Below, piece by piece: positions 14,182-24,369 of a DNA stretch of 64,000 nucleotides; the stretch's first letter is position 1; each line of letters begins with the position of its first letter. A program made the translations under genes and the position numbers. Origin of the DNA: Cercozoa sp. M6MM (Eukaryota > Protista > Endomyxa: Ascetosporea). The stretch lies in assembly GCA_040357565.1 (NCBI GenBank), contig JBDODJ010000010.1, one strand, 5' to 3'. The notes below the pieces were generated by a model. That model ran no database searches. It saw only the letters and a program-made list of their open reading frames with translations, and was not told the DNA's origin.

Positions 14182-15751
14182 ATGGGTGTGACAAACTTAG
14201 ACTGCGATGTGTTCGCATGGAATGTGTGGCGTTATTGTTCGCTGTCTTTTAATGCTTCTTCATGTAGCTGTGGACGAATGGGAGCACAAAGCGCGCGAAG
14301 TGCTGCGCGCCCGGAACTTTTATGGCGTTCTTGGTGGTACACTTTGATGCTTGTAAGAAGTGTACTTTGTGTATTTTTGTGGCAGTGGATAGGAGTGCCA
14401 CGTCAGCTGAAATCACGCGTGCCTACAGGAAGCGGTAGCTGTTTTGCTCTAGTATGTTTGTACACGCACACCCACATTTTTGCGAGCAGGGCGATGAAAT
14501 TTCACCCGGACAAGAATCCCCGACGGGCTGAACTTGCTTCCGAAGTGTTCAAGAAGGTTACGAGTGCCTACTCCTGTCTCAGCGACGCCGAGAAACGCCG
14601 ATTCTACGATGCCACCGGTTCTGAATCGCCGCAACAACACGGTACCGCTTTGTTTACAGTTTTTGAAACGACAAAGAAGGAGGTGTGGTGCATGCCCGTT
14701 GTGCCTGATGGTTACAGGCATGAGACAGCGACAACATGCGCACATGCACATGCACCACGCCGATGTCGACGACTTGTTCCGCGCCTTTTTTGTACCCATT
14801 GTCCTTGTTCCCTTGCATTTTTCTGCTCCTCTGACTGCTCCTTTACCCTTTAACCCAGGGTCACCAAGGTGGTCCATTCATGTACACCCGTCGCGCGGGC
14901 CCGTTCCAACGACAGCACTTTTTCCGACAGCAGCGACCGCGTGCGCAACCTGAAGTAAGAACCATGTGAATAGATACGCCAACATCATGTCTGATTGCAG
15001 GAGAGGCCGTGGACGACGCTGTTGCTGCAGTTTCTGCCTCTCATTGTACTACAGCTGCCTGCCTTTTGTTTGTTTCGAAGACGCTTTTGCGTGTAGGTAT
15101 TGTTGCTGTCACAAGTGTTCACTGCGGGAGTATTTTCATCGTCCAATGCTGCTGCCGAACACTCCGACCTTTTTCGGTGCATGTGAGCGCCTTTGCGTCA
15201 TTATCAATTCGACCAATTATGTTCTACCTTCATTTTACTTTTACACCAACAGCTTGAAACGCGAGCGCGGCTTTTCGCGACGGCAGCAGTCGCAGCTGCA
15301 CCGCGACGAAGCCTACTTTGTGCCGCGTGATTTCCTGCACGTTGTGAGGTGCAGCTCACCTCTTCTATAATTTGCACCGTCTACCTCTATTACCTTCCCA
15401 CTTTACCCTCGCATTCATTTGGACTGTAGAGACGCAAACATGAGACAGCAGATAGATTCCCTTGTGCATCGCGCCTACTTGGTAGAATTCCCCCTGTATG
15501 CACGAATGCCGCCATGCCTTTTGATTTTCAGAACAAATACGCAAGCGAGTGTCACGAAGAGTACCGGAAGGCGCAAGATAAAGTTGCCACAGGCACGGCT
15601 GACAAGCAGGATTTCTTGCGCGCGTCCGATCAATGTCGGTTCTTTCATCCCTCCATCCATCGTCGGTGGTTAATGTTGTTTCTTTGTTTCCTGCGCAGAC
15701 ATGGATTACGTCAGGAGTTGTCAAAAGTACCAAGAATCCCTGTACTCCTGA
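14182..15751 (+). CDS. DnaJ co-chaperone, DNAJB12/14-like (J domain, TM, DUF1977-like tail)
   Basis: RNFYGVLG|VDRSATSAEITRAYRKR|AMKFHPDKNP...FKKVTSAYSCLSDAEKRRFYD. Hydrophobic LLLQFLPLIVLQL segment. C-terminal YFVPRDF...ECHEE...SCQKYQ. Confidence 0.85.
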
Positions 15752-15968: not shown

Positions 15969-18900
15969 TCATTGAAGCAGCTCGTTGAGTTCACGCTGCA
16001 GGTTGGCTCGGCAGTTGTCCTCCAGCTACGGTTCCAGGTAACCCACATCACATCATTCACGATGCTCTATGCTGGTTTCAGTTGTACCGATGCAGCCAAT
16101 ACAGGCGTTCGAAAAAGCGCATTGGCGTTTAGGGCCTTCTTCTGCCACATGTGTACACAGTTGCAGGCGATACACGGGGTTTTGAAAGGAAGCTACGAAG
16201 CGCTCGAGAACCGCACACCTGCCTTGACGAAAGGCTTCAGGCGAAAAATGCGCATACTCCTCGCGAACGCCTCTGCAATATGAGGCAAAATAAAGGTATA
16301 ATGGCTAAATGGTGATTGTCATAGAAATCCCTACTTGGCGTACGCGTCATACTGCTCGGTCGAAGGAGCTCCCAAGATGGCGAGGTCGATGTCCAGAAAA
16401 AACTCGGCGTCCGTGGTTAACACTGGGATAAAACGGTCTCACAGGGAATGAGGGCGGGAACATAAAATGTGGCAGCTGAAAAGTATCACGGATGGTACGC
16501 ATGGACGGATCAGTGTGCGTAGCAGTGGAACGGATCATCGATGCCACTGAATAAAAGTGATCACGCAGTGACGTTCAGTGGCCACAGGCAGGCAAAAGAA
16601 AGTGAGATAGTACCATCCTCCGCAAAGTCAACGCTGATCTCGCAGTCTCGTGCAGTCTGCATGTGGCATGAGGTCACACGGAGCAGCAGATGGGTAGTGG
16701 GCAACAGGGATAATATGTGTCAGAACGGGCAAGACTGAAATACTTGGAGCCACAGAAGGGCACTCTGCTCTTCGTTGTCCTTACATGTACTGTCATAGAT
16801 GGCATCGTGAAACAGCGCGCAGCACAGCACGGCATGCACCTGCTCACGAGGAAAGGTGAAAAGAAGTAGAAATGCGTGTGAGAAATACCTGGTGACACAT
16901 GTGCCAGTGAGCCAACACGTGCCGTATGAGCGCAGCCACGTGCGCGGGCGAGTGGTACGCCCTGCCGCGCATGCCACTTAATGCGTCCTTAACTGCTGAC
17001 TGCCAAGCCACTTGCTTGTGCTGATATCAGGAGAAACAATAACAATAAGTGCCAAGTGGATAAAGATGGGAGCAGGCATTAAACGGTAACAAGAGCACCT
17101 CAGGAACTGCGGGGATCGAGGGAATGTCGGCAACATCGCCAGTGCACACGTCCGACGCAAAGCGCTCCCACTGGGAACACTCGCGCCACGTGGCTGCTCG
17201 CACACGTGCGCCTACATGTGTCGAATCACACAGTGACCCAGCGGCCCAGTAAAAGGGCATCAAAGATGTGCCAAACCTTCAAGGGCTTCGTGACACTGCC
17301 GGACCGAGTCTTCTACGTCCACTATAAAAGAGTAGAGGTAAAAAGGTATAGGGTATCGGCAGACGTTAGTATAGTAACCAATGGTACACAAAGCTCCAAG
17401 AACAAGATGCGACTTCTGAACTCTTTCGGCGTCGCTGTGCTGTGAGTTGATGCGTTTTTTGGCCTAACGAAAGGTAGTGAAGGAACAACATGGGCACGGC
17501 GTAACAGGGTACCTCATTACGAGACAGGTTGTTTCGTTCTTTGAGCCGCTCAATGGCGAGCTCTTCCGGGACCACACAGGTCCAAACCTCGTGGCAGGCT
17601 AGGGGCAAGAAAGATAACAGGGCAAAACGGAAACACAGGGGCGGAATCAGTGAGTATAGTGAGTATCGTATCCGCAGACTCACCTTGGTCCCAGCCCGCC
17701 TCGAGAAGCACCGCGGCCTCAATAACAACGATTTGTACAGACTCGTCTTTCTGTGAGGACGGGCAATGGAAGAAAGAGGAGCAGTGTTTAACAGGAGGAA
17801 GAACTCAATACAGCAAACTGCGCGATACGCTGTTCCGTGAGTTTTGCTATTTCCGGCCACACGATTGAGCATAGCTTCCTATTCACAGAGGAGATAGCAA
17901 CAAGGTAGCATATGGGTGCAGAGGTAACAGGAAAGGGAAAGGAAGATAACTCCATCTGCGCGGGATCGGCGAAAACAATACTGCCAAGGCGACGTCGTTC
18001 GATGTTGCCAGTGTCGTCAATGACCTACGTAGTGCAGCGACACACACAGGAAGCGAAAAGAGGTAACAGCAAAGTAACAGAGTCAACAGGGGAAGTGGCA
18101 TGGATAAATGAAACCCACCTCAGATCCAAAGCACTCTTTGATTGCGTTGAAAGCTGCTGTTCCGGGCAGGTAGACCTGGGGATGAGGTGATAGGTTAAAG
18201 GGAGGGTTACTACATATTGAGATGTACCTCATGACCTAATTTGTCCGCATCCAACTCAACTACTCCTGTTCATCGACGATGTGACAAAAAGGGGTACTAT
18301 AGCTACAAGGGAACTCCAGGGATGGGTACCAGGCAGTTGAGCCAGTCGCTTCGCCATCGAGGTTTTGCCAGATGCGATCCCACCCGTCAACTGGACACAA
18401 GGAGTAGTGAAGGTAGAGCAGCTGATGAGGTAAATGCAAAGGTACGCCAATGCGGTATAGACGCGAACCGGCGCTAAAAATCGTTTTCTTCGGCTCGCGC
18501 ATGAGACTACGCAGAAGGAACAAAATAGAGTCACAGCTACAGTGGATGCCACATGACTAGCACACGACACGAACCGTCCAAGCAGTGCGTGACGTTTCTC
18601 AGTCGAAGACGCCTTGTCGTCTACGGCGGCTACAGCGTTCGCGAATGACAGAAAGAGACGCCAAAGAGGAAACATAGTACACGATGATGATATGAGGTCT
18701 ATGAAGAAATTCGACAACGGCGGCAGCTTTCGCTCATCGCGCATTTGGCCAATCTTGTCCTATTGGACGGAAGGAAGGGTGATGTAGGAGCAATGAATAA
18801 AGGTCAAAAAAGGATAGTTAAAAAATGGAACGAAACAAAGCAAGGAACCACGCCACGTTTTGTCTCAGAGGACGCAACAAAACAGTCAAAGTGGAACCGA

Positions 18901-20052
18901 TCGTTAATCTGAAAAGTGGCAACGAGGTAGAGAGGCAGACAGGAATCAGAGTGAACTAAAACTACGGTGGGTCCATAGGGGTCCGGAATGCTTTCGACAA
19001 TAACCTGTACACAACAGGAAAACACATGGTACATAAAGGGGTAACAGTAAAGGTAGCGTACATCAAGCGACGGACGCACGATCTGCAAAAACTCTCGCAC
19101 GGCGCGCATTCGCTCTTGCGTTGTCAGCATCAGCACCGACAGGTGCTTGTCCTGCAAGGAGAACAGGGGATGACATGGGCAACATACGGAAACATGGGGC
19201 AGCAGGAACGACAACGCAGAAGAGTACATCGAGCGGGTAATCAGTGACACCACAGTACATGCTGCTGCTCGACAGCAGAGCGGCAGCCGTCAACAGCAGC
19301 TTGTGTCCTACACAAGGGGTAGCAACGGGGTGGGGATGATTGACGCGGTACCAACATGCAGCTGATCGAAGGTGCCACCGAGTACGGTGAAGTTGAATTG
19401 ATCGCGCATGTGCGTTTGCTCGTCCTGCTTTACTTCCGCAGCGTCATTCGCCGTGACTGAGACCGTCACTGCAAATGGAGACACTCTCCGATAGATACTC
19501 TTTATCCCTGAGAAACACATGTGCTACATGGATCGAGGTCGTCGGACGTCATCACATGGTAGAAGTCGTACAGAGTCTCGTTACTTTGGAACAAGGACAG
19601 GGTTAAAAAAAAACGAAGGTCAAGAGAGATGAGTACACGGGATCCACGGCAAGCACACAGTCGACGCTGTCGTTCGCACTCCGCACGGCCTCATACACCA
19701 CCCGTGCGCGCTGCAGCGCCGTCTCCACTGTCGTATTTTCCTACAAACACGCAGACATGCCTTCTTGTGTAGCTGAAGGCTGCTTGAGTTCAAGTGAAAC
19801 AATATACAAAAATGTCGCTCTCGACGATAAGTCGGTGTCGTGTTCGGACAGCAGCCTCGGCAGCGTGACGAGCGGCACTCTCAGTGTCCACTAAAAGCAG
19901 CATGCAGAAGTCTGGCGCGACATGAAAACACACGTAGGGACAAAACAAGCCGTACGGGCCGACGAGAGACGCAACAACACGCGCGAGAAGCGAGCTGCAT
20001 CACTTGGTACATGCAATGCCCGCTGAAGCAAATCCCGGGTCAAAATAGACAT
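15969..20052 (-). CDS. COASY: Coenzyme A synthase (PPAT + dephospho-CoA kinase) with fused C-terminal HD-superfamily phosphohydrolase (COG4339-like)
   Basis: PPAT: VLGGTFDQLHVG|HKLLL, CGVTD, DPYGPT, VASSETKRG, KASST. DPCK: LTGGIASGKTS, DADKLGH, RRRLGSIVFAD, IVWPEI, IEAAVLLEAGW, RINSQ. Then in frame: RAYHSPAHV, LFHDAIYD..KDNEEQSA, FLDIDLAILG, VREEYAH, FRQGRCAVL, RANLQREL*. Confidence 0.88.
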
Positions 20053-20261: not shown

Positions 20262-23200
20262 ATGAGCGACCTGCAGCTGAATTTCTTCTCGTCGACACCG
20301 TCCGAGGCGTCGACAGGCGCTCCGGCTCGCAGCAAGCAGCGAAGTCGCCGGCAGCGTATTCGCGCGCAGTCTCGCCGACGTGGCGGAAATGCCAGAAAGC
20401 CAAGAAACGTCAATCACAACGATCACGAATACCGGCAAGTCGGCAGGCATGCTGCTGGTCGCCTCGGCCAGCAAGGCCAGCACCAGGGCGACGGTCGCGT
20501 GTACCGTTACCGACCTACAGCGACGCTGGGTGTGTCAGCGAAGAGCAAGGAGGACAGCAGTGCCGAGACGGACAGCTCCGCACCGGCCAAAAAGAAGAAA
20601 AAGAAGAAGGTCGTGCTGTCCGAGAAGGCCAAGGTTGACACGGACAAGAAGCGCAGTGTAGCAGGTACCTGTTTTTGTTTGTTGTCTGTTGTCTGTTGTT
20701 TTTTATGATTTCGCGCAGCGCCCAAACCGCAGGCGATTGACGCAGTACGCACGAATGCGGGCGATGTTGTTGAGAGCGTAGACGCAGTCGCGGTAAATGG
20801 GAGAGGGGATACGAGAGGTGGTAGATGTGAAGGGTTTGGGGGTACGGGTGATAAATTAATTATGCTCTTTCAGGACGCTGCCGCTCTCGCTGCTCTACCA
20901 CAAATGGATCGTGCTGGTAAGATCACCCCACTACACCTCCCTGTCGTTTGCCCCCTGCACACGGTCGATGTAGGTGGTGTCAAGGAGTCGCTGCAACACA
21001 AGATGTCGCGAATTGGCGCGTCTAAGCGCGCGTTCGATGGTGCGTCTCCTTCGCTGAGCATATGTATGGTGTACACTGTTTGTGCACGTGGGTGTGCAGA
21101 CGAGAGTGACTGGCGCGGCATGCGACTGGACGAGCGCCTGGTGCGACAGCTGCGGGAGCACATGCGAATCCTGCAGCCTACACAGGTGCAGACGCGCGCC
21201 GTGCCGGCTTTCCTCGGGCGGCGTGACGTTCTTGTGCGTTCGCCTACGGGCAGTGGCAAAGTAGTCTTGCTTTGCTCTCCCGTTGTCGATACCGTTTGCG
21301 CTGTATGAGAGATGCGAGGTGTGCGCAGACCCTGGCGTACTTGGTGCCATTGGTGCATCGACTCGCTGTATCGTTCGTCTTTGGATTTTATATGGCTTTT
21401 GTTACGTTACACATGTGTATCCTGTGTTTTGGTAGCGCCAGTCGGCCTCGCTGAGCCGAGAGAATGCTGAGGCCAGCTCGGGTGGCGTAACGCGAGCTGA
21501 TGGCACCCTGGCCATCGTGCTGGCTCCTACGCGCGAGCTGTGTCTGCAAATTGGTATCCTTCCCCGTCCTCCTTGTGTTGCCCTCCTGGCCTTACTTCTG
21601 TTTCCCCTGCAGAGGCTCAATTGCAACAGTTGTTGCGGGCTTTCCATTGGCTCGTGCCGGGCGTTGTTATGGTTCGATATCACACGCCACTTTATACCCT
21701 GGAAATCTTATTCATATGGGATTGATTTGCAGGGCGGCGAAAAGAAAAAGAGTGAGAAGGCTCGGTTGCGTAAGGGTGTGACGGCACTCGTGGCCACCCC
21801 AGGTCGGTTGCTGGACCACATGCGCACCACGCAGGTACTTGACTCCCTCCCCTGATTAATACGTTACTCCTTCTTGGTTAGTCGTTTAAGTACGACCGCT
21901 GCGGCATGCTGGTGCTCGACGAGGCCGACCGCCTGCTGGACCTCGGTTTCGAAAAACAGGTGCGCGAGATAGTCGAGTCTCTGCGCGCTGCTGCTTCGCG
22001 CACTGGTGCACGTGGCCGCACACTGCAGGTATCGCTCTCCCCTTCCTTGGCTTGAGTACTCTTGTGTGACTCCCTGGAATACAGACGGCCTTGGTGTCGG
22101 CGACTCTGCCGCTGAAGCTGCGCAAACTGGCAGAATTCGCCCTCCAGGTGCTCTTTATCCCTAGCTTTTTGCTGCAGAAACTGTGCATATTACCCCATTC
22201 TCGCAGAACCCAGTGACAGTGCACAGTACGGCATTGGCCGACGAACAGATCCTAGCGCGCCAGGAGCTTCTGGAAAAGGAGCCGTTCGCTCAGTCGGAAC
22301 AAGAGCAAAACGCAGCGGAGGACGAGCAAGAGCAAGAGCAAGAAGAGGAAGAGTTGCAGAAGCCGCGCCGGCGTGGCGGCATCGATGCAGAGTATTTCTC
22401 ATCCGACGAGGAGTCCGACAGCGAAGATGAGAAAGATCAACAGGTATCTCTCCCATTTTACTTTCCGGAAGGGTAAGTGGGGGCTATCACCTGTGTATCG
22501 ATTTAGATTCCGGAACAAGACGAAGTTGGTGGTGTCGTTGTTGACTCTATTGAGCACTCGGTAAAAAGCAGCAACGGGGTTTGTGGCGTAATACATGTGC
22601 GTGATGTAGTTCCTGGAGACGCCGCCGTCGCTGCGCCTGCCACTGCTTGGTGCCTTTCTGCGACGTGAACTGCTGGATGCCAAGGTACTTGGGGTGTGTG
22701 TCTGTGTGCATGTTAAAATTGTACGCGGGGTATGGCATTGCATTAGTCGGATGGCGAAGCCTGCAAGGTGCTCGTTTTCGTGCAAACAACTGCACAGGCT
22801 GAGTTCTTGTCCGAGCTGCTGCGGCTCTCCTTTTGGTATCTGCATTTTACTCGTGAACTTTATGTGGGCATTATAGTGGTTTATGGAGATTTTAGTTGAA
22901 ATTGTTACATGGGTGTACGTGTGATGTAGGCCGGACATTCACGACTATGCGCACCTGCGAGAAGGCGCCCAGGTAGACTGGAGCAGCGAACATGCCACAC
23001 CGCTTCTCGATACTGAAATTTCAAAACTGCACGGCAACATGTATCCTGCCTTGTTTACTTTTTGGGGTGGGTATTGTGTGCTCCATTCTACTAGGCTGCA
23101 AAAGGAGCGAACTCAGGTGTGGAAGGACTTTGGGTCCAAGGCTGGGTACACGCACTTCTTGCTTTTGCGCGAGGTGTACATATCATTCCGTAATCGCAGA

Positions 23201-24369
23201 GGCATCTTGGTGTGCACGGATGTTGCTGCTCGTGGTCTTGACTTACCTGCTGTGTATGTTTAGCGATCCAGTATGTCATGGTTTTCTGGTCCAATGTATC
23301 ACAACTCTGCGCAGGGATTGGATCGTGCAAATGGACTGTCCGATGGACCTGGCGGATTTCGTGCATCGTGTTGGCCGTACTGCACGCATGGGTCGCAGGG
23401 GTATACTAGATCATACCGCTCCTCTGCGCGCGCGCGTGTGTGTGTGTGTGTGGTGTGTGGTGTGTGCGCCTCGGTGTGCCTGTGTATACCAGTGTCCGTA
23501 GGTCGCGCGATGTTGATGTTGCAACCGTCGGAGAAAGCCATAGTGCCGCTTCTGAGCAAAAAGTTTGGCATTCGTTTCGAGGAGTCGCAGCTGCGCGATG
23601 TGTTGCGTGCATTGGTATAATTCGATTAAGCAGAAGGAAGTTGCCTCGTATGTCTGTATACTTTGAGTGCGCAGGTGGATGATGCCATGAGAACACGTCT
23701 TCGCATTGCGAAACTGAAGGGCATGCATCGACCACCTGGGCATCAGTTGCAGGTATCAGCTCGCGAGCACTACTGTTCTCTGGAACAGTTGTTCTGTGTG
23801 AGCACAGGACCAACTTGAGTTCCTAGTGGCGAATGTTGGCGCCCTGCGCCACAAGGCAACGACGGCGTTCAAGGCCTACCTGCGTGCGTACACTACCTAT
23901 CCGCGCGCTCTCAAGCACATCTTTCACGTGCGCAACTTGCACGTTGGCAAAGTGTGTAAGAGTTTTGCATTGCGCGAGCCTCCGTCCATGCTGAAGATTC
24001 CAGGAATGTTTGTGCCGCACAAACACCGCTCGGCCGGGTCGGGTGACAATGAGAACAGGAGACACCTCGGCGAACCTCGTGACCGCAAGCGTGGTATCCT
24101 AGACAGCAGTGTTGATCACGGTCGAAGGAACTTTACTCACCGGAGCGATGGCAAGAAGCCGTTTGCTAGACCGAAAAAACAGTTTGGCCACAAGCGAACA
24201 CAGAGACCTCTGCGTGGTAGTCGTATCTGTGTGGTTGATGTCCTTGTACACGTGCATGCTGGGTGGGTACGGGTACGTAGGAGAAATTGAATCGGAAAAG
24301 CTGCATCGACCAGTCAAGAAACTGCGCTCCCGCTCTGCGGCAGCCATCACGCTGTCGGAGTTCATGTAG
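20262..24369 (+). CDS. DBP7: DEAD-box RNA helicase DBP7/DDX31
   Basis: PTQVQ, SPTGSGK|[18 protein letters not shown]|[91 protein letters not shown], terminal SEFM*. Confidence 0.93.

Follow-up and report, generated by a model that had tools for sequence, protein, structure and literature searches.

Can a single polypeptide that completes coenzyme A (CoA) synthesis also carry a domain that hydrolyzes a phosphoester of the same pathway? This question is raised by a gene on the minus strand of a 64,000-nucleotide (nt) stretch of contig JBDODJ010000010.1 from Cercozoa sp. M6MM (GenBank assembly GCA_040357565.1), which we call the window and to which all gene positions refer. The gene, at positions 20052-15969, encodes phosphopantetheine adenylyltransferase (PPAT) and dephospho-CoA kinase (DPCK), and a preliminary description of the window proposed that its spliced frame continues into an HD phosphohydrolase domain. 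The final steps of CoA synthesis belong to textbook biochemistry, but little is known of how CoA and its 4'-phosphopantetheine arm are recycled or trimmed in cells and viruses, and we know of no phosphopantetheine-releasing enzyme assigned outside a few bacteria. The reading that we favor is that one gene specifies one polypeptide made up of a eukaryote-type PPAT, a DPCK and then, after almost no linker, a C-terminal HD phosphoesterase of ~235 residues that would be coupled to the last two steps of CoA synthesis. We give this reading as a whole a probability of roughly 0.55.

A 30-exon gene model spans PPAT, DPCK and an HD domain

Exon 24 alone, searched against 1.84 billion protein representatives, retrieved MES1907825.1 (P0121), a 732-residue entry titled 'MAG: hypothetical protein MHM6MM_000866 [Cercozoa sp. 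M6MM]'. P0121 is the submitter's own model of this gene and does not count as an independent relative. The public annotation already contained a single fused protein, without remark, and the model is to that extent not new. In the window, P0121 resolves into 30 exact blocks, which gives 30 exons separated by 29 GT-AG introns (44-94 nt) between a start ATG at 20052 and a stop TGA at 15971-15969, and a frame-consistent GT-AG intron is present between each pair of adjacent coding segments. Whole-protein tests were made with the database entry; exons were otherwise searched singly. Across the 23.6-Mb assembly (2235 contigs), matches to P0121 or to the HD profile described below were confined to this locus, and COASY (the bifunctional CoA synthase of PPAT and DPCK) and the HD family are each single-copy within the limit of exon-level sensitivity. 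The short introns and the size of this protist assembly show that the contig is not human DNA. A six-frame Pfam CoaE search of the genome missed even the COASY-HD locus, whose exons are too short.

The two enzymes of CoA synthesis come first in the chain. PPAT is encoded by exons 5-11 (19468-18575, residues about 114-287) and matches PF01467 at 31.5 bits (cut-off 21) and the archaeal/eukaryotic subfamily model NF001985 at 82.7 bits over residues 139-279, below the subfamily cut-off of 104. Its GGTFDQLHVGH motif is interrupted by intron 5 and is divided between exons 5 and 6. DPCK follows in exons 13-21 (18390-17277, residues 308-498), with its P-loop GGIASGKT in exon 13. Over residues 306-490 the PF01121 match reaches 147.5 bits and the TIGR00152 match 141.3 bits (NCBIfam equivalog cut-off 65.55); at the level of single exons the CoaE match is weak. 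The frame does not stop at this point. The continuation claimed in the preliminary description, in which SHLVLGAL, LDVEDSVRQCHEALEG and ARVR are joined in frame, agrees exactly with exons 20, 21 and 22; about eight further exons had been counted, and the model contains nine after DPCK.

What is encoded by these nine exons? Residues 498-732 are covered by no Pfam or NCBIfam model, and the HD exons searched one by one matched nothing in Pfam or NCBIfam and nothing among solved structures. A Novosphingobium homologue of exon 24 (tblastn E 7e-6) led to 476 collected relatives that carry the JGI name 'predicted metal-dependent HD superfamily phosphohydrolase'. We take this standalone family to be COG4339 or IPR009218. 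It lacks a dedicated Pfam or NCBIfam model, PF01966 being matched weakly in 22 of 70 members and not in P0121. A hidden Markov model (HMM) of 209 positions was built from 60 standalone bacterial members, and in a six-frame scan of the 64 kb it matched exons 23, 24, 26, 27, 28 and 30 in order (positions 24-207 of 209, ~112 bits summed); the strongest other match in the window was ~5 bits. The later profile and a set of invariant residues were derived from 70 members. P0121 matches this profile at 163.6 bits over residues 540-730 (HMM positions 23-206 of 209) and keeps all nine invariants (R555, Y557, H558, H562, H590, D591, E602, S605 and D654). In blastp comparisons, bacterial members share 34-44% identity with residues 555-730 (E down to 5e-30). 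The profile check that had been proposed for the spliced protein thus gave CTP_transf_like (PF01467) and CoaE (PF01121), both matched, and the HD domain by a custom profile.

The domain starts in exon 22 (17211-17099, residues 499-535) with the N-terminal helix TWRECSQWERF, which was placed by alignment with the standalone member P0183, whose residue 15 onward aligns to P0121 from residue 500; exon 22 searched alone gave no significant match. Exon 23 (17020-16889; HMM positions 24-72, 11.8 bits) carries the RxYHxxxH motif as RAYHSPAHV, with R555, Y557, H558 and H562, and exon 24 (16839-16744; positions 60-95, 36.7 bits) carries the metal-binding core FHDxxYD ... DNEExSA, read as LFHDAIYD and DNEEQSA, with H590, D591, Y594, N601, E602 and S605. 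The middle helices and T633 are encoded by exons 25 (16656-16614) and 26 (16546-16499), both exact blocks of P0121, the second with a weak HMM match at positions 105-122. DIDLAILG, within FFLDIDLAILG, lies in exon 27 (16422-16335; positions 124-150, 22.2 bits) and supplies D654, the last metal ligand. Exon 28 (16272-16197; positions 145-178, 32.6 bits) encodes VREEYAH and FRQGR (FRQGRCAVL), with R674, E676, Y677 and R689. Exons 29 (16141-16088) and 30 (16025-15969) complete the protein with the C-terminal helix RANLQRELNELLQ, the conserved N722, RANLQREL and the stop (HMM positions 192-207). The preliminary description had placed RAYHSPAHV, FFLDIDLAILG, VREEYAH with FRQGRCAVL, and RANLQREL where exons 23, 27, 28 and 30, respectively, are now found. 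Its claim of a complete HD domain is upheld by a profile match from end to end, and by the invariant residues that are kept the domain is also catalytically intact.

Intron 21 and the question of one protein or two

Whether DPCK and the HD domain share a polypeptide hinges on intron 21, a single 65-nt, phase 1 intron (17276-17212; AAG/GTTTGG ... ACATGTAG/G) with a frame-consistent GT-AG pair. If this intron were retained, the DPCK frame would end five codons past the donor, at TGA 17262-17260, and an ordinary two-domain COASY would result. One alternative is that two adjacent genes have been wrongly merged, such that COASY ends at this TGA (...EALEGLAHL, stop) and a separate HD protein is made from the ATG at 17260 (MPFYWAAGSLCDSTHVGARV...) or by re-initiation on the same mRNA.

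Several observations at the junction count against a single protein and in favor of two. The ATG at 17260 overlaps the DPCK stop (TGATG, 17262-17258, as read from the sequence) and is in frame with exon 22, whose frame stays open across the whole intron. Splice sites were scored leave-one-out, with matrices from the other 28 introns of the gene, and the donor of intron 21 scored 1.2, which is among the weakest in the gene and is equalled by 42% of decoy GT sites; the pyrimidine fraction is also low, at 0.57. A long-protein search with the HD region of P0121 returned only P0121 itself and P0124, a double HD protein described below, and metagenome scans with P0121 and with the Variovorax CoaE-HD protein gave nothing useful. 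No other eukaryote with the fusion was found by these searches, so that the junction is without comparative support. Moreover, a standalone eukaryotic member of the family exists in Dictyostelium (P0101), ab initio gene callers often merge neighbors, and phages L184 and L204 have the same gene order as two overlapping open reading frames (ORFs).

How strong is the case for splicing? The TGATG resembles a coupled stop-start of the prokaryotic kind, and we take it as chance. The acceptor of intron 21 has a middling score of 3.1, matched by 10% of decoys, and introns 11, 16 and 28 have equal or weaker signals, yet these must be spliced if conserved domains are to be kept in frame. The signals of intron 21 are weak but lie inside the range of the gene's other introns, and the splice-site scores speak neither for nor against the intron. 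A separate HD gene would need 17 codons from within intron 21, and these have an intron-like make-up (likelihood ratio ~2.8), with a score as low occurring in 1.6% of exon windows and one as high in 6.9% of stop-free intron windows; the putative N-terminal extension of a separate protein therefore scores as non-coding. Exon 22, which already encodes the first helix of the family, begins ~50 nt after the TGA. This distance is too short to hold a terminator and a promoter, or a 3' end, a promoter and a 5' untranslated region; even in this compact genome, flanking spacers measure ~90-200 nt. The submitter's gene caller arrived at the same fused model, and a single-chain CoaE-HD protein in Variovorax indicates that the architecture is viable. 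We infer that intron 21 is probably spliced in the main transcript, and we predict with equal confidence from the sequence that COASY and the HD domain are read as one fused protein. The merging of two neighboring genes seems an unlikely explanation when set against the missing space and the non-coding character of the extension.

Fusion and linkage of the HD family with CoaD and CoaE in bacteria and phages

If the cercozoan protein is fused as predicted, does the HD family meet the same two enzymes elsewhere? The survey of the architecture proposed in the preliminary description was fruitful in part: no example was found in other eukaryotes by the searches described above, and linkage to coaD and coaE was found in Variovorax, Bacteroidota and phages.

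A tblastn search of plasmids with P0121 matched four Variovorax replicons. One 405-residue Variovorax ORF consists of CoaE and the HD domain (WP_068674112.1) and is annotated 'dephospho-CoA kinase' only. Its gene overlaps coaD (WP_068674111.1; 154 bits, cut-off 103) by 4 nt, and both are carried by a secondary replicon, within an island that also contains DpdB and further mobile-element genes. The search with exon 24 also returned P0123, in which an HD domain is followed by a CoaD-like domain and which has ~50 relatives of 310-396 residues. Such HD-CoaD fusions are present in at least 50 Bacteroidota genomes, several cultured Mucilaginibacter species among them, and both domains were found in 58 of the 80 genome loci that were kept. 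The C-terminal domain of these proteins is structurally closest to PPAT, with all of the top 50 PDB matches being PPAT (E down to 8e-10). Among 401 bacterial genomes of one phylum, standalone HD genes were present and no CoaE-HD fusion was found; an apparent 701-residue frame in the bacterial sample was rejected as a high-GC artefact. A cluster of the ESM Atlas (598 residues, CoaE plus cytidylyltransferase, 63 members) aligns structurally to the DPCK and HD domains of P0121 and is kept only as an unconfirmed lead.

Phages provide the most varied arrangements. HD-CoaD fusions were found on 43 IMG/VR phage contigs, the longest of 675 kb, and about a dozen phage contigs pack HD, CoaD and CoaE on one strand in five arrangements: [CoaD-CoaE][HD], which is the order of the protist protein (L184, L204); [HD][CoaD-CoaE] (L198, L201, L214, L216); [HD-CoaD][CoaE] (L089, L090); [CoaE][HD-CoaD] (L122, L135); and [CoaD-HD][CoaE] (L253, L202). 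The CoaD part scored 108-163 bits in six of the seven tested phage proteins that have one (NCBIfam cut-off 103.3), and the CoaE part scored 70-128 bits in five of eight tested (NCBIfam cut-off 65.55). A possible triple fusion in L115 was left unconfirmed by NCBIfam, its CoaD part reaching 80.8 bits and falling under the cut-off. One paper counts coaD and coaE among the abundant viral auxiliary genes of snow viromes and does not mention an HD partner (PMC11097641). The arrangements above suggest that virome coaD and coaE are parts of a three-gene module.

Further observations on these proteins were made along the way. Phage CoaD-CoaE is often one fusion protein of ~385-393 residues, mostly above NCBIfam cut-offs and adjoining the HD gene, and this bacterial-type PPAT-DPCK fusion may itself be undescribed. 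At L202:2400-3549 the CoaD and HD frames overlap by ~75 nt with a frame shift, and the ISSS motif of the CoaD C-terminus lies at the start of the HD frame; the overlap reflects either an error in sequencing or a genuine frameshift inside a CoaD-HD fusion. P0124, a 405-residue protein from an ENA metagenome, has a SpoT-type HD_4 domain (residues 16-157) followed by a COG4339-like HD domain (228-401), which places two HD hydrolases on one chain. In Novosphingobium a DUF4031 protein (L001:1889-2269, minus strand; PF13223, 74.8 bits) is encoded directly upstream of the HD gene and divergent from it, and an Atlas cluster of 310-residue Actinomycetota proteins with DUF4031 also aligns structurally to the HD domain; DUF4031 is a second recurrent partner of the family. 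A 400-residue bacterial protein (L173:871-2073, plus strand) has an unassigned N-terminal half of 200 residues before its HD domain. Standalone members occur regularly on large Pseudomonas plasmids (109 records) and on jumbo phages of several hosts, among unannotated genes, and some records bear the name 'N-methyl-D-aspartate receptor NMDAR2C subunit'.

Probable separate fusion events and a likely role in CoA metabolism

In a tree of HD domains, the cercozoan domain groups with a standalone Dictyostelium member (support 85), the Variovorax domain groups with a standalone bacterial member (support 86), and the HD-CoaD fusions form a clade of their own (support 99). These are three separate places in the tree, which points, with moderate support, to fusions that arose in separate events. 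The label 'bacterial-type' given to the cercozoan domain in the preliminary description was somewhat too strong, as the domain groups with the Dictyostelium member and not with the bacterial fusions. The same description had read the fusion as a Rosetta stone for a CoA-linked role. That proposal has gained from the Variovorax CoaE-HD protein with its adjoining coaD, from HD-CoaD in Bacteroidota and phages, and from the permuted phage trios. Several independent architectures now support the inferred place of the HD family in CoA metabolism.

A fused protein could nonetheless carry an HD domain with no particular tie to CoA. The domain might be a general housekeeping phosphoesterase acting on nucleotides or RNA ends, with its linkage to CoaD and CoaE due to shared regulation or to gene crowding on mobile elements. 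Part of the survey favors this possibility and weighs on a CoA-specific role. The majority of the family is standalone, encoded on megaplasmids and jumbo phages next to uninformative neighbors, and none of the ten standalone bacterial HD loci sampled has CoaD or CoaE nearby. Neighborhoods were likewise uninformative for the Bacteroidota fusions and for standalone HD genes on a Pseudomonas megaplasmid and a Rhizobium phage. When 73 phage loci were chosen by HD motifs alone, 16 had CoaD within 3 kb and 10 had both CoaD and CoaE, and 57 were without CoaD or CoaE nearby. The phage islands (L087-L166, L184-L256) contain genes of RNA repair and of NAD and dNTP metabolism (RNA ligase, PNKP, CCA-adding enzyme, Thg1-like, YqeY, NADAR, Sir2, Prs-like and dCMP deaminase), so that some of the co-location may be generic. 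In Bacteroidota, four of the five genomes tested keep a canonical coaD beside HD-CoaD, and the fusion falls below the coaD cut-off, which marks the HD-CoaD proteins as paralogues whose CoaD-like partner may not be a true PPAT.

However, a housekeeping role has to account for at least three separate covalent fusions, seen in a protist, in a betaproteobacterium and in Bacteroidota/phages, whose partners are the two enzymes of a single two-step pathway, and for five phage gene orders that keep the trio together, which are hard to obtain by crowding alone. We regard it as improbable on these grounds, although the RNA-repair and NAD neighbors in phages leave open a more general role for the HD domain on nucleotide or RNA ends.

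Fold and proposed chemistry of the HD domain

Which bond would a CoA-linked HD domain cleave? The fold was compared using a standalone family member, whose AlphaFold model has a pLDDT of 97. Foldseek gave no close solved relative (best E 3e-3). Exhaustive structural alignment placed class I cyclic-nucleotide phosphodiesterases (PDEs) first, with Z 15-16 and a root-mean-square deviation of 3.6 Å over 200-208 of 209 residues, followed by the uncharacterized HD hydrolase 2pq7 (Z 14.7), YpgQ and YedJ (~11), and the small alarmone hydrolases, SpoT and Mesh1 (8-9.5). Among the 70 members there was no Pfam match to PDEase_I at E up to 1, and the motif is HDxxYD, not HDxxH; HD_4, the RelA/SpoT-type model, likewise had no match among family members. 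The family is not a member of the class I PDEs and at most works in a PDE-like manner. Judging from the modeled fold, its chemistry is predicted most likely to be hydrolysis of a phosphodiester or of a ribose-linked phosphate, and the evidence leans, somewhat beyond an even chance, toward a phosphoester of the CoA pathway as its target.

The mechanism that we favor is drawn from E. coli AcpH, a metal-dependent acyl carrier protein phosphodiesterase with a non-canonical HD domain, whose product, 4'-phosphopantetheine, is the substrate of PPAT. The HD domain would be a small phosphodiesterase resembling the cyclic-nucleotide phosphodiesterases, and it would free 4'-phosphopantetheine from a phosphodiester-linked donor, for which holo-carrier proteins are the obvious candidate. 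PPAT and DPCK of the same chain would then turn 4'-phosphopantetheine back into CoA, which would make the protein a one-way, three-step recycling module. Such a one-way pathway might explain why phages keep all three genes and why the HD domain is fused most often to CoaD. This assignment has points against it: PF04336, the AcpH model, has no match among the 70 members or in P0121, and the choice of a specific substrate is conjecture by analogy. Release of 4'-phosphopantetheine is our best guess, a tentative one to which we give well under an even chance.

A close second is that the domain, fused as predicted, is a 3'-phosphoesterase acting on the adenosine 3'-phosphate of CoA-family nucleotides, converting CoA or acyl-CoA to dephospho-CoA or 3',5'-ADP to AMP, or opening a 2',3'-cyclic phosphate. 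The domain and DPCK would then act as a kinase/phosphatase pair by which the 3'-phosphate is set or edited, comparable to the Rel synthetase/hydrolase or to PFK2/FBPase2. Every one of the closest solved folds cuts ribose 3'- or 2'-O-P bonds in nucleotides, P0124 couples a SpoT-type HD_4 domain to the HD family, the HD domain directly follows DPCK both in the cercozoan protein and in Variovorax CoaE-HD, and phage neighbors include RNA-end repair enzymes for 3' and 2',3'-cyclic phosphates. On the other hand, an opposing kinase and phosphatase would run a futile cycle in phage operons that also carry CoaE, and the commonest fusion partner of the HD domain is CoaD, not CoaE. We hold this 3'-phosphoesterase activity to be slightly less likely still than release of 4'-phosphopantetheine.

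Extending the preferred recycling mechanism beyond the protist, we hypothesize that the HD family is a missing enzyme of CoA turnover. HD, PPAT and DPCK together would make up a self-contained 'CoA reconstitution' module in which 4'-phosphopantetheine is recovered, for example from holo-carrier proteins or from the products of CoA breakdown. In phages the module would serve as an auxiliary or counter-defence pathway comparable to NAD+ reconstitution, and the protist would have welded it into its only CoA synthase. In this full form the proposal is speculative, and we would not bet on it at much better than one in five.

Neighboring features of the window

The COASY-HD gene is flanked by a divergent DEAD-box helicase-like gene upstream (20262-24000, plus strand; motifs in separate exons), which starts ~210 nt from the COASY-HD start codon, and by J-domain coding sequence downstream, near 14500 on the plus strand. 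The candidate promoter motif TACWGTA occurs at 11 sites in the window against 4.4 expected (717, 8507, 10605, 31315, 41785, 48473, 52301, 57245, 57853, 62614 and 63825), and none of 100 shuffles reached 11. A scan of the 64-kb window placed none of these sites in the COASY-HD gene or its upstream spacer, so the motif is of no help in deciding between one gene and two.

Significance

A literature search found nothing on the fusion, on the function of the HD family or on Cercozoa sp. M6MM. The family had been called functionally uncharacterized in the preliminary description, and it is indeed without a Pfam or NCBIfam model of its own and without a paper on its function that we could find. The IPR009218 entry named in the literature presumably denotes this same HD family. 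It is listed as 'HD phosphohydrolase domain' in bacteria, fungi, Metazoa, archaea and viruses (PMC11898892). In our survey, a widespread family of bacteria, megaplasmids, jumbo phages, amoebae and fungi becomes linked to PPAT and DPCK through three or more separate fusions as well as through phage operons of shuffled gene order. A family of 'function unknown' would thereby be reduced to a short list of substrates among which one enzyme assay could decide. The gene model of a COASY with a third, uncharacterized catalytic domain is probable, and the route that it offers to the function of a widespread family is clear and cheap. Should the predicted protein indeed be produced, it would be the first CoA synthase with three activities of which we have found a description.

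Comparison with known systems

How does the predicted protein compare with systems already known? E. coli AcpH serves as the model for the favored mechanism and has no detectable sequence relation to the HD family. The class I PDEs are the best structural match of the family and share with it the paired YH...H and HD layout of the metal site, whereas the family is ~130 residues smaller and has HDxxYD where PDEs have HDxxH. The standalone HD proteins are collinear with the HD domain of P0121 over their full length (163.6 bits, with all invariant residues kept); they are free proteins of ~200 residues in bacteria, megaplasmids, jumbo phages and Dictyostelium, whereas in P0121 the domain forms the C-terminus of COASY.

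COASY of animals and other eukaryotes has the same two domains, PPAT and then DPCK, as P0121, and ESM Atlas models from arthropods and chordates align to P0121 residues 15-508/531 with TM scores of 0.75-0.82 (target-normalized). The Atlas clusters, of ~470-575 residues, end after DPCK, as the preliminary description had stated for animal COASY, whereas P0121 adds the HD domain at residues about 498-732 if intron 21 is spliced. Among prokaryotic systems, the phage [CoaD-CoaE][HD] modules (L184, L204) have their genes in the order of the protist protein. Phage and Bacteroidota versions differ in having prokaryotic-type enzymes, partly separate overlapping ORFs and other orders, and the CoaD of Bacteroidota is a paralogue beside a canonical coaD. 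The Variovorax protein differs in its bacterial-type CoaE and CoaD, in an HD domain that branches with bacterial standalone members, and in a PPAT supplied, unfused, by the adjacent gene; in it, as in the cercozoan protein, a domain of the same HD family comes directly after DPCK.

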